From: Malacoraja senta
Taxonomy: Eukaryota
Length of the DNA: 64,000 nucleotides
Assembly (NCBI GenBank): GCA_038087875.1
Contig: CM075977.1
Coordinates: 111,352,001-111,416,000 of the forward strand
Direction: 5' to 3'
A program made the translations under genes and the position numbers. Shown one piece after another: positions 31,842 through 46,424 of the stretch. The notes under the pieces are model-generated. The model saw only the letters and a list, made by a program, of their open reading frames with translations. It was not told the DNA's origin and did no database searches. The stretch's first letter is position 1. Every line of letters starts with the position of its first letter.

Positions 31842-32201
31842 ATATCACAGTCAGGCGTGTTGGGACCACAGTGTGAAATGGTCCAATATTGAGGTTCACT
31901 TGGCACCGAAACCTAGCACCATCGTCCTCCCGGCACAGTCGCTCCACCATTATCGAGACATTCCTCTGTCTGAGGTTCCCTGCGAATCTGAACCGACTCC
32001 CTCCGGCCTCCTGTGTCACTTCATCGCACCGTGAGTAGCCGGGACCGGGATATGTACAGTTAAAAACAACGCTCTCAGCCCCGGATTTTCTCTTGTGCCA
32101 CAGCACGGAGCCGGTGAGGATGTGATCAGTGGGTGGGTGGGTGAATGTACACGGCAACACAGCGGAGGCCCCTTCCACTGCAGACACAGCTATTGTCCAA
32201 C
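31842..32201 (-). CDS. Gene B first V-set Ig exon (V1), Siglec-15-like; 5' boundary lost in gap
   Basis: WTIAVSAVEGASAVLPCTFTHP...VFNC...SRC...RFRFAGN...VERL..EDD..RFRCQVNL; t|gtaag donor, phase 1. Confidence 0.9.
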
Positions 32202-33572
32202 NNNNNNNNNNNNNNNNNNNNNNNNNNNNNNNNNNNNNNNNNNNNNNNNNNNNNNNNNNNNNNNNNNNNNNNNNNNNNNNNNNNNNNNNNNNNNNNNNNN
32301 NNNNNNNNNNNNNNNNNNNNNNNNNNNNNNNNNNNNNNNNNNNNNNNNNNNNNNNNNNNNNNNNNNNNNNNNNNNNNNNNNNNNNNNNNNNAGAGAGAGA
32401 TGAGTCAATGTTAGAACAACTGGGGAACATATCTGCTGTTTCAGAGCTGCACTGCCTGGTGTGTAGTCACAAGTGCTACCGTGTGCGATGTCCGTGTGCG
32501 TGACTTCTACAGTAACATAGGGGAGTGGTTTCCAGACCGGGAGATATTGGGGGTGGCGGGAGTGGTATTTGCAGATGGGGGTAGTGGGGGGGGGGGGCGG
32601 TGGATGTGTGGTATTTTCGGATGGGTTGGGAGGGGCGAGGGGGGCGGGGATGGGAGGGCGGGGGTGGGGGTGCCAACAGCAATGAATAACCAGAAGACAG
32701 CCACTGAGGTCCAATTCTGGGGCAGGGGATGGGCTGTCTATAATTCGTGTCTGAATCTTGGGTCGGTTGTCTATATATAAATACCATTGTATTTTTTTCT
32801 GGATGAACAGCGATATTTGAACATTGTGTAACTCGGATTTGGTACAAAGGCGTTTCTGGAACTCAGTCCGTGTGACAGTATGGTTACAGCAGGAAAATGG
32901 GACATTCGGCCCCTTCCTCTATGAAAGAGCAATATTATCAAACCTATTCACCTGGACCAATAGACCCGCAAATGCCTTCGTTTCTGAGGCATTCCTCATT
33001 CCCTTAAAACGCTGCAGTTTTATCACTCACGCTTTCCTCCCCCATCCCCACTTCCATCCGGCCCTATGTTGCAGACCAGTGAGGAACATTGTTTCTTCGA
33101 ACCTACTTGACCAATCGCATTCCATCTGTAACTTCTTCTTGTTCCTTTCACCGACGGGAACAGCCTCACTCTGTTTTACACCCTTCATAATTTTACATAC
33201 CCCAATCGGGTCTCCTTGCAATCTCCACTTGCTCCGCTAATAAATAAGACTGTGATCTCCTCTGCTCTTAATTCCAACTCCCCATTTTCGCTTGCATCGA
33301 ACAACATTCCACCCACTTACCCGTCAAGTGTCCCACTCTGGGTTGGAAAGGATTGGTCCGTGTGCAATTGTATCCACCTACTCTGCCGCCGGTTGACCCG
33401 CACGGAAGGAGTGAAGAGAATCATCAAGACCTCATCCACTCCCTGGCAAGGGCACTCAGTGACGGTCAAGATCAGTATATTTCCCACCGCCGACTGACTT
33501 CGGTGGGAGCTAAAGTACAGACAGCTGGAGCACTGGCAGCATCCGATGAGACAAGGAAGGGAAAACACCTAC

Positions 33573-33633
33573 TGTAACCCAGGACTGACACCGAGAGCAG
33601 GACCGAGCAGAGACAGACCCGGAGAGAGCGCAT
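33573..33633 (-). CDS. Gene B signal-peptide exon (MRSLRVCLCSVLLSVSVLGY)
   Basis: 61 nt, phase-1 donor gtaggt; paralogous to 43836-43896 including the 5' UTR actgaagtgttggcgATG. Confidence 0.88.
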
Positions 33634-33709
33634 CGCCAACACTTCAGTGTGGTGTCCACCTCACCGACTGCTGTTTAAGTGCTGGCACTGAAATACAGAA
33701 GTAGCTTAA

Positions 33710-33731
33710 ACTTCCTCTATATTTCCCGTAA
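33710..33731. promoter_or_regulatory. Putative PU.1/ETS site (AGAGGAAGT, minus strand) next to a GAS/STAT site (TTCCCGTAA) upstream of gene B
   Basis: Exact motif matches ~80-100 nt upstream of the ATG; function is inferred. Confidence 0.4.
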
Positions 33732-42957: not shown

Positions 42958-43835
42958 GTCTACATAGGGGTGGTTCCGCTTACAAGCCAAATACACATAT
43001 CGATTACATTAAAATATTATTGACAGACCCCCAACGCAATTTCAAAGAGTCCCAACAATGTTTCTCCAAAAGCTTCTGGAAGGAAGTTAGTTAACTGAAT
43101 AATGCAACATTTACCTAGGCAGTACAAACAATTCAGCCAGGGCTTCACACATCGGCCAATCACCAAACAGCAGGGAAAGTGTCTTGTCTTGCAACATTAT
43201 TTACATTATTTAAAATCCCTTTGCAGTAAACCAATGAAACCCATGCATCTACAATACCTTAGAGTTTTTCGGCACAGTCCTCATACATATTATCAATTGC
43301 GAGGACAGCTGGACCTTCCTTATCTGATGTATTGATCTGGGACCTAGACTTCCTGGCACCAGCTTGCAGCTTGAGGCTTCTCACAGACAAAGGCTAACAG
43401 ATGCATAAATTCTTTGCTTTATTTTAGCTCTCTTTTGGCCAGGATTTACAGCTCCATGGCGATAATACTGGAGACACGAACATGCAGATCCGGAATATTG
43501 TGCGAAAACCAAACTGCAGGACAAAGATCAGCGGGTCATGCAACGCCTGTGGAGGAGAATGGACAGACGACCTGTCGGGTCTTGACCTCTTTATTCAGAC
43601 GTCGTCTGTCAATGTCCCTTCACGGATACAGCTTAACCCGCTTAGTTCCTCCATGACTTTGGTTTTTGCTCATGACCCTAACCTTGCTCAGTTTGAAATG
43701 ACTTATTATCAGTACTTACAGCGGTTCCTTACTTTTTTTGCAAAAAATGAAGAAATACTTGGTGCAAGTTCCGCATTTCAGCGTCAAGAAGCTCCCAGCA
43801 GTGGGTGAAGTGGACTCCACACTGAAGTGTTGGCG

Positions 43836-43896
43836 ATGTGCGCTCTCCGGGTTTGTCTCTGCACCGTCCTGCTCTCCGTCTCAGTCCAGGGTTACA
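43836..43896 (+). CDS. Gene C signal-peptide exon (MCALRVCLCTVLLSVSVQGY)
   Basis: 61 nt, a|gtgagt donor, phase 1; paralog of 33573-33633. Confidence 0.88.
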
Positions 43897-46039
43897 GTGA
43901 GTGTTTTCTGTTGACCTGATTAGCTCGCCCTTGTTGTCTCAACATCTCTCCCACTGTTCTGGTTCATGCTCCATCGGTGCTCCTGCTGTTTGTACTTTAA
44001 CTCATGCCGAGTGCAACGATTCAAATATATTTTATTGTCACATGGACCTAGGTGCAGTAAAATACTTTATTTTGCATACAACCCGGGTGACACGGTGGCG
44101 TAGCGGTAGACCTAGCGCCAGTGACCGGGTTCGATCGTGACTCCGGGTCCTTGCCTTAAGAAAGTTGCTCGTTCCCCCGAGAGCTGCGTGGGTTTTATCC
44201 GAGATCTTCGGTTTCCTCCCACACTCCAAACGTACAGATTTGTAGGTTAATTGGCTTGGTGTAAATGTAAAATTGTCCTTAATGTGTGTAGGGTCGTGTT
44301 AACGTGCGGGGATCGCTGGTCGGTGCGGAATGGTGCTGGTCGGAGGGCCTGTTTCCGCGCTGCACCTGTAAACTAAACTAAAATAAACGAAACTAAAACC
44401 ATATAGCAGTCCTCACCCACGCAGGACCCAAGTGTCGCCCCATTTTGGCGCCGACAACGTTACAGAAGTGCCCTTCCGAAGTTGGTGGCGATGTCTTCTT
44501 CGTGTAGGTCACATGGCGGCAAGATGAGATTGCACATGGAACCGGCCTTTTATGAATTAGAGCGGTGCACATGACAAGAAAGAGGGTGAAATGATACTCG
44601 ATGTCGGCGGGAGTAGGGAGATTGATCTCAAAGCAGGCCAGAAGCAATCTTATTTAATGGCGGTGAAAGCGGAAGTTGCCAGGAGATGTGATTGTGATAT
44701 GGAAAATTATGAAGTGAATAGCGTGAGGCTGTTCGCGTTGGTGGAAAAAGAAGAACTTGGAGTCATAGAATAAAGGTAATTGCGACACTGTTGCTCAGAA
44801 ACATTATTTCTCACAAGGACTGGCTGGTTGGAGGCTGAGCTAAGTGGTGCGTTCTAAAGTAAGCCAGTGATGCATCTGAAAGAATGGATTTTTTAAAGAA
44901 ATAAAGAGCGGAAACGGGCCTTTCGGTCCACATATTCTGCGCCTACCAGCGATCACCCCGGACACTCACACTATCCGACACGATAGGGATACATTTACTA
45001 TTATACCAAGCCAATCAGCCGACAAACCTGTGCGCTTTGGCGTCTTGGAGAATGGGACGAAACCGGCGATCCCGGAGAAAACAGGATGTTTCTAAAACCA
45101 ACGCAGGTCACGGGGTGAACATACAAACTTCGTAATGACAGCACCCGTAGTCAGAATCGAACCCTTGTCTCTGGCTCTGTTAGGCAGCAATTCAAACTCT
45201 GCGCCATTTGTGGGTATATGGGACGGGTTGTGTGACTGGGATTGCATTGCTCTTACACTGAGCCATTCTAAACTGAAGAGGGCGACTGCCACACTGACGG
45301 AATTCCGCGAATTTTCATAGCGCAAGTCCCCGGGATCGTCTATTAACGCAAGAAACGGCATTTATTTTTAAAAAAGGAACGTGTTCGGGGTACAGGCGAG
45401 CATTATCGTCAGCCCTTCCCCCTATCCCCCTTCCCCACCGCCCAACAACTCGCATCACCCAACTCCCAACGGGAACCTTGATTGAATCCCAACAAATAAC
45501 TCATTGCTGGTCATCCATAATTGCACGGACATTCACCCACCCCCTCGTAATAATGTACAAATGAGCCCAGGGATCGGGTAGACGCACAGAGTATCTTGCC
45601 CAATGGAGAGTAATCGAGAACCAGCGGGCATAGGTTTAAGGTGAAAGAAAAAAAAATAGGAACCTGTGTGGTATCTTTGTCACACAAAGGGTGGTGGGTG
45701 TAAGGAAAGAACTGCCGGGGGAAGTAGATGAGGCAGGATCCATCGCGAAGAAGCAATTCGATAGTTAAATGGATAGGACAGGTTTAGAGGGATATTGGGC
45801 CAAACGCAGTCAGGCGAGTCTAGTGTACATGGGACATGTTGGTGGGTGTGGGCAAGTTGAGCCGAAGNNNNNNNNNNNNNNNNNNNNNNNNNNNNNNNNN
45901 NNNNNNNNNNNNNNNNNNNNNNNNNNNNNNNNNNNNNNNNNNNNNNNNNNNNNNNNNNNNNNNNNNNNNNNNNNNNNNNNNNNNNNNNNNNNNNNNNNNN
46001 NNNNNNNNNNNNNNNNNNNNNNNNNNNNNNNNNNNNNNN

Positions 46040-46424
46040 TTTTCGTACAAGAGTTGGACAATATCCGGTGCTGATGAGGTGTCCGCCGTGGAAGGAACGT
46101 CCGCTGTGTTGCCGTGTACATTCACCCACCCAACCACTGATCACATCCTCACCGGCTCCGTGTTGTGGCACAGGAGGAAATCAGGGGATGAACACCTTGT
46201 GTTTAACCGTACATATCTAAGTCTTGACCGCTGCAGCGGCGAAGAAGTGACGCCGGCGACTGGAAGGGGTTGGTTGAGATTCGTGGGGAACCTCAGGCAG
46301 CGGGATGCCTCGATAATGGTGGAGCGACTGAGCCGGGAGGACGATGGTTCAAGGTATCGGTGCCGTGTGGAACTCAACGTTGGAAAACTTCACGCTGTGG
46401 ATCCAACAGGCCTGACCGTGAGAG
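46040..46424 (+). CDS. Gene C first V-set Ig exon (V1), Siglec-15-like with RYRCRVE motif; acceptor probably in gap
   Basis: SWTISGADEVSAVEGTSAVLPCTFTHP...LRFVGN...VERLSREDDGSRYRCRVEL; g|gtgag donor, phase 1; resembles the Siglec-15 V-set (WSMQVPPEVSAEAGDAAVLPCTFTHP...YFCRVEF). Confidence 0.9.

Follow-up and report, generated by a model that had tools for sequence, protein, structure and literature searches.

Two head-to-head Siglec-15-like genes of Malacoraja senta: probably independent changes of the sialic-acid arginine and of an accessory cysteine

Two neighbouring Siglec-15-like genes, here called B and C, lie in a stretch of 64,000 nucleotides (nt) of the skate Malacoraja senta (assembly GCA_038087875.1, contig CM075977.1, positions 111,352,001-111,416,000, forward strand; hereafter the window). 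In its first V-set domain (V1), B has Gln at the position of the Arg that anchors sialic acid in Siglec-15, and C has lost one Cys of a loop pair. Did the two genes divide an ancestral function between them, or do the two changes have separate histories? The initial annotation proposed a reciprocal loss of Siglec hallmarks in a subfunctionalised pair, with C as a possible sialic-acid binder and B lectin-dead or switched to another ligand. We consider it probable that B and C are old head-to-head paralogues in which the Arg and the Cys changed independently and at different ages, and that B is no canonical sialic-acid lectin.

The domains in question are encoded by two exons:

31842-32201, minus strand: V1 exon of gene B, a Siglec-15-like V-set, with its 5′ end cut by an assembly gap and a phase-1 GT donor at 31841-31840.
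46040-46424, plus strand: V1 exon of gene C, a Siglec-15-like V-set, with a phase-1 GT donor at 46425-46426.

The two V1 domains are 66% identical in protein and 78% in nucleotide sequence, and both match the Pfam V-set (expectation value E 1.9e-8 for C and 5.9e-7 for B). The motifs first noticed in them were all confirmed. C reads VFNRTY...DRC...ERLS...RYRCRVE: the F-strand Cys (TGC, 46361-46363) is followed by Arg (CGT, 46364-46366), and another CGT (Arg, 46208-46210, in VFNRTY) stands where the family has its first loop Cys, so that the second loop Cys (TGC, 46232-46234, in DRC) is now without a partner. B reads VFNC...SRC...ERLC...RFRCQVN: the F-strand Cys (TGC, 31905-31903) is followed by Gln (CAA, 31902-31900), both loop Cys are present (TGT, 32058-32056, in VFNC; TGC, 32028-32026, in SRC), and ERLC adds a further Cys (TGC, 31935-31933). 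Near its N-terminus, B has WTIAVSAVEG where C has WTISGADEVSAVEG, an in-frame difference of 12 nt that leaves B four residues shorter. The A-strand Trp (equivalent to W44) is retained in both, and the deletion would bring that of B four residues closer to strand A′. B also deviates from the family in having Phe at Tyr106 and Asn in place of the Glu following the Arg. C has a G-strand Leu at a position that is Phe in 59 of the 103 V1-type domains of our family table. The number of Cys is odd in both V1 domains (five in B, three in C), and each would carry one free ectodomain Cys.

What these positions mean depends on their equivalence with human Siglec-15. In its structure, C64-C142 is the disulfide between strands B and F, C95-C104 joins the C′ strand to the C′-C″ loop, and R143 forms the salt bridge to the sialic-acid carboxylate, with R143A abolishing binding (PMC10264397). 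R143 and the V-set Cys were reported as conserved from mammals to teleosts (PMC7226832). Among all PDB sequences, the best phmmer match of both V1 exons was human Siglec-15 (7zoz_A, E 5e-12 and 3e-11). Its YFCRVEF was aligned with high posterior to RYRCRVEL of C and RFRCQVNL of B, so R143 corresponds to the Arg of C and to the Gln of B, as the initial annotation had placed them. The same alignment set FRC...ELC of Siglec-15 against FNC...SRC of B: the loop pair of B is C95/C104, also as proposed, and C has Arg at C95. AlphaFold models of V1, built on a 49-sequence family alignment (predicted local distance difference test, pLDDT, 86.2 for C and 84.5 for B), were in keeping with this equivalence at the level of the fold. 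Their top PDB fold match was again 7zoz_A (TM-score 0.79 for C and 0.76 for B, 34% identity), and sialoadhesin came next for C; the models thus fold-match the V-sets of both lectins.

HMMER over 1.8 billion representatives, together with a word-indexed search, placed both genes in a large Siglec-15-like family confined to sharks, rays and skates. This elasmobranch expansion counts at least 90 proteins from more than 15 species. Automatic annotation calls many of them "Siglec-15" or "sialoadhesin-like", and we found no description of the elasmobranch family in the literature searched. The nearest relative of B is Leucoraja erinacea LOC129715273 (P0153; 84% identity in V1 and a near-identical transmembrane (TM) exon), and that of C is an Amblyraja radiata "Siglec-15" (P0162; 86% identity in V1). 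In a carefully built maximum-likelihood tree of 43 batoid V1 domains, B with P0153 (support 100/98) and C with P0162 (100/99) formed separate pairs within a skate clade (95/90), with the order of the three subclades of that clade unresolved. Moreover, the P0162 locus of A. radiata (L001) runs collinear with the window at 88-90% nucleotide identity. Separate pairs on the tree and orthologues in other genera make B and C old paralogues. Recent tandem duplicates diverging reciprocally were rejected, given the tree and the 66% V1 identity.

The orthologues also date the changes. P0153 has the same V-V-TM(Lys) layout as B and, like B, Gln at the R143 position (TFRCQVDL); thus, the Gln predates the split of M. 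senta from Leucoraja. It is without the four-residue deletion of B, has Ser at the position of the extra Cys of B, and also has five Cys in V1, its own extra one being elsewhere (GGSRCRF). P0162 reads VFNCTY..DRC..YRCRVEL: it has Arg at the R143 position like C and, unlike C, retains both loop Cys. A contig of run X2, from a relative about 90% identical, has T at 46208, which makes the codon TGT (Cys).

The state of these codons in other batoids and sharks separates the two changes further. In the family table, with state changes counted on a quick tree, Arg stands at the R143 position in 77 of the 103 domains and is absent from 26, which have His (9), Asn (4), Gln (3), Gly (3), Ser (2), Tyr (2), Cys (1), Lys (1) or one alignment gap. 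The loop pair is complete in 99 of the 103 and lacks its first Cys in only four. On the quick tree, the Arg state changes at least 11 times and the Cys state at least four times. Loss of the Arg is common and recurrent in this family; loss of the Cys in C is rare, private to M. senta and a single T-to-C change. A reciprocal loss is therefore not borne out, since L. erinacea shares the old Gln, whereas the Cys is lost privately in M. senta and still present in the A. radiata orthologue and in the X2 relative.

The course of events starts with the B/C duplication within the skate lineage, ahead of the separation of M. senta from Leucoraja and Amblyraja. The F-strand Arg that anchors sialic acid then became Gln in the B lineage, with its neighbours also changed (Tyr to Phe, Glu to Asn/Asp), and B meanwhile stayed intact in its open reading frames (ORFs), splice sites and TM Lys. 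In C of M. senta, the T-to-C change replaced the first Cys of the accessory disulfide (human C95-C104) by Arg and left one free Cys. Judging from its sequence, binding of sialic acid through the canonical salt bridge has most likely been lost in B. It may be kept as an intact activating-type receptor that recognises another ligand or signals without lectin activity. C would have lost, recently, an accessory disulfide on the ligand-facing C′-C″ region with its Arg kept, a private event that was probably tolerated or else marks the beginning of decay. The Arg and Cys changes would then be independent, differ in age and amount to no complementary division of function. Of the initial reading, the absence of the canonical Arg holds for B and for its L. 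erinacea orthologue; the partition with C is not supported.

It is doubtful, in our view, that the B lineage goes as far as a conserved functional receptor on a non-sialic-acid ligand, with the free Cys of B and C forming disulfide-linked homo- or heterodimers.

Beyond V1, B and C are arranged head-to-head with their first exons 10 kb apart, and each has four recognisable exons (signal peptide, V1, V2 and TM). The exons other than V1 are:

33573-33633, minus strand: exon 1 of gene B, ATG and signal peptide MRSLRVCLCSVLLSVSVLGY plus 1 nt of a split codon, with a GT donor at 33572-33571.
28397-28777, minus strand: V2 exon of gene B, a second V-set, with AG acceptor and phase-1 GT donor intact.
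26086-26185, minus strand: TM exon of gene B with Lys, IVILCIPLGLKTFALFVMSFIYC, with acceptor and GT donor intact.
43836-43896, plus strand: exon 1 of gene C, ATG and signal peptide MCALRVCLCTVLLSVSVQGY plus 1 nt of a split codon, with a GT donor at 43897-43898.
49044-49445, plus strand: V2 exon of gene C, a second V-set with a long F-G region, splice sites intact.
52071-52170, plus strand: TM exon of gene C with Lys, VMILCLPLGLKTLALLVMCFVLYC, with acceptor and GT donor intact.

Every readable acceptor and donor is canonical and the phases are compatible in both genes; the V1 acceptors fall inside gaps. The second immunoglobulin exon scores as a V-set in both (C V2, E 1.9e-12), and no C2 exon was found between V2 and TM in either. 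In both genes the hydrophobic TM exon includes LGLKT, whose Lys would make an anchor of the type that pairs with DAP12-type adaptors, the pairing itself being predicted. For the tiny cytoplasmic-tail exon, a search with the short tails of relatives gave no reliable match in B or C. B as an obvious pseudogene was rejected, as its exons are all open and its splice sites canonical.

The alternative that survives best, although we hold it to be unlikely, is relaxed constraint: one or both genes would be drifting towards a pseudogene, and the loss of the Arg and of the Cys, the added Cys and the deletion would have accumulated neutrally in a multigene family of fast turnover. Ratios of nonsynonymous to synonymous change (dN/dS, Nei-Gojobori, few sites) of 0.5-0.7 lend it some weight. 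They are 0.48 for C against A. radiata in V1 (synonymous divergence dS 0.13, similar to intron divergence) and 0.69 in V2, and 0.56 and 0.53 for B against C in V1 and V2. The terminal branch of C on the maximum-likelihood tree is three times that of its orthologue, and the odd Cys count in both V1 domains speaks for the same explanation. So does the V2 F-G region of the A. radiata C orthologue (L001 ~21950-21965), where a 10-nt deletion relative to the window causes a frameshift and a stop (..RPASIAPS, then stop); the NCBI model P0162 ends in V2 at that stop, without a TM. This frameshift is either a pseudogene or an error of the A. radiata assembly. Against relaxed constraint, the known exons of both genes are open with canonical splice sites, dN/dS is below 1, and the TM(Lys) exon of the B lineage is almost identical across genera. 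Values of 0.48-0.69 point to moderate constraint, not to free decay.

The subfunctionalised pair of the initial annotation is improbable on these data. It would make C the sialic-acid lectin and B a receptor with a switched ligand and the ancestral loop architecture, with complementary losses. It draws on the Arg of C and the Gln of B at the R143 position, on the retention of both loop Cys in B, and on the two genes being adjacent and intact. However, the ages differ, with the Gln common to L. erinacea and the Cys loss private, and Arg loss is frequent across the family. B and C are not recent duplicates, each being closer to its orthologue in another genus, and with the order of the skate subclades unresolved they need not even be sister genes. 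Nor is C a clean lectin-competent partner: it is without a disulfide kept by 96% of the family, it also deviates at the mostly-Phe position of the G strand, and its A. radiata orthologue is frameshifted.

Some of the evidence bears on how far the assembly can be trusted, because the 5′ end of both V1 exons adjoins an assembly gap:

45868-46039, no strand: assembly gap at the end of intron 1 of gene C, 172 N, which take in the acceptor and the first ~2 nt of the V1 exon.
32202-32391, no strand: assembly gap at the end of intron 1 of gene B, extending ~17 nt into the B V1 exon.

On both sides of the C gap, the sequence follows A. radiata in the same order and orientation (45308-45867 with L001 17328-17906; 46040-47850 with L001 19130-20895), and the spacing between them is about 1.2 kb in A. 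radiata versus 172 N in the window. The A. radiata V1 exon begins 2 nt ahead of the Phe codon that is the first post-gap codon of C; therefore, C is missing only about 2 exon bases. By comparison with P0153 and C, the B exon is missing about 17 nt (5 codons and 2 nt). In both genes, the phase-1 junction codon with exon 1 falls in the unread part. A. radiata has an (AG)n/(TC)n microsatellite of ~330 nt (L001 18792-19122) that closes intron 1 and stops a few bases short of the V1 exon, and the intron-side flank of the B gap (32392-32400) ends in (TC)n, TCTCTCTCT, which fits a similar repeat. Both gaps are likely to lie at such a microsatellite. The 5′ third of the V1 exon is common to many paralogues, and a public run of the same organism (X1) has for it only a collapsed contig (depth 179, 9 differences). 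Microsatellite and paralogue-shared sequence together probably explain why both exons are broken at the same place. Downstream of that part, X1 contigs at 46114-46338 and 46319-46625 (word depth ~30) match the window with 0 differences, which confirms both CGT codons of C.

An artefact, with the differences arising as assembly or sequencing errors beside gaps in a paralogue-rich cluster, is very improbable despite the gaps adjoining both exons, the collapsed contig, the deletion of B near a contig end and the low share of B words in X1, because the Gln recurs in an annotated protein of another genus, CGT at 46208 and the Arg codon stand in X1 contigs with 0 differences, and B and C, with 22% of their nucleotides different, are too far apart for an unnoticed chimera. 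Read error had been named from the start as a possible source of the two codons, and for the Gln and the CGT it was rejected on these grounds.

Several points still weigh against two old paralogues with independent changes and a non-canonical B. X1 may be the source sample of the window assembly, so its support is perhaps not independent, and the share of B V1 words found in it is only 0.31 (0.88 in X23). The 12-nt deletion of B, which follows WTI, begins 11 nt from the contig end; it and the ERLC Cys are unverified candidates for features private to B. No B orthologue was found in A. radiata within 10 kb upstream of the C orthologue. The V2 frameshift there means that the C lineage may be decaying rather than functional, and the dN/dS values come from few sites. 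Finally, the Arg just before the F-strand Cys in B (RFRCQ) faces the same side as the lost Arg and, judging from its position, could conceivably still bind an acid.

Apart from these points, X1 and X23 are two samples of the same organism, and C words (46040-46700) reach 0.78 in X1 and ~0 in X23. The unequal presence of B and C in the two could reflect coverage, allelic divergence or presence/absence variation.

The surroundings of the two genes hold further elements. A third TM(Lys) exon, VTQSYMVLILWTPLGLKTVFLSVMCVIFYRDKL, at window 5-118 on the plus strand is presumably the end of a gene 'A', with its V exons before the window and tail-to-tail with B. About 250 nt downstream of the C V2 exon, 49694-49868 (plus strand) carries a partial copy of the 3′ part of that exon (..ISKPDEYRYFHNVHPPFIYLSQRELRLPVTPG..), which A. 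radiata retains (L001 22275-22358) and which may represent either a relic or an alternative segment for the G strand. In the introns of the C region, 46516-46753, 46992-47586, 48896-49014 and 49491-49600 reach word depths between 10^4 and 10^7 in every genomic run and show many joints; these are interspersed repeats of very high copy number. A run of ORFs at 55200-57350 (minus strand), between C and the end of the window, resembles, by eye, a remnant of a mobile-element recombinase or reverse transcriptase. In A. radiata, a 7tm_1 gene (G-protein-coupled receptor) is called at L001 30472-31973, about 8.5 kb downstream of the point where the truncated model of the C orthologue stops.

Compared with human Siglec-15 (UniProt Q6ZMC9, PDB 7zoz), their best match in sequence and fold (34% identity, TM-score 0.76-0.80), the skate V1 domains have the same canonical B-F disulfide, and both B and C share its A-strand Trp and its TM Lys for DAP12-type adaptors. 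The F-strand motif YxCRVE, with Arg directly after the Cys, is retained in C, whereas B has Gln at R143; the accessory C′-C″ loop disulfide is retained in B, whereas C is without the C95 equivalent. The G-strand contact region is three residues shorter in the skate domains, and the second domain is a V-set, in contrast to the C2-set of Siglec-15. Across vertebrates, Siglec-15 is one conserved orthologous gene of V-C2-TM type; the skate genes form a multigene cluster of V-V-TM type.

A parallel is found in mammals, where the essential Arg has been lost repeatedly in expanded Siglec subfamilies, such as human Siglec-XII and the Arg-lacking CD33-related Siglecs of primates. The likeness lies in repeated, independent loss of the Arg within an expanded, fast-evolving subfamily with the rest of the gene intact. 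This pattern now extends to the Siglec-15-like family of skates, rays and sharks, with the Arg absent from about a quarter of V1 domains and at least 11 state changes. The idea of a reciprocal loss adds little to it: the Cys was lost through one private point change, the effect of which is uncertain. B and C offer a natural pair of proteins for asking whether this family binds sialic acid and what its Arg-less members do. If the B lineage did move to another ligand, which we think doubtful, the shift would have taken place within an ancient expansion, among elasmobranchs, of activating and inhibitory receptors of the Siglec-15-like kind, as an independent parallel to the evolution of mammalian CD33-related Siglecs. 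The skate case differs from the mammalian one in that it concerns a Siglec-15-like, activating-type subfamily in another vertebrate class, and in that an Arg-less lineage is conserved as an orthologue and stays intact across skate genera.

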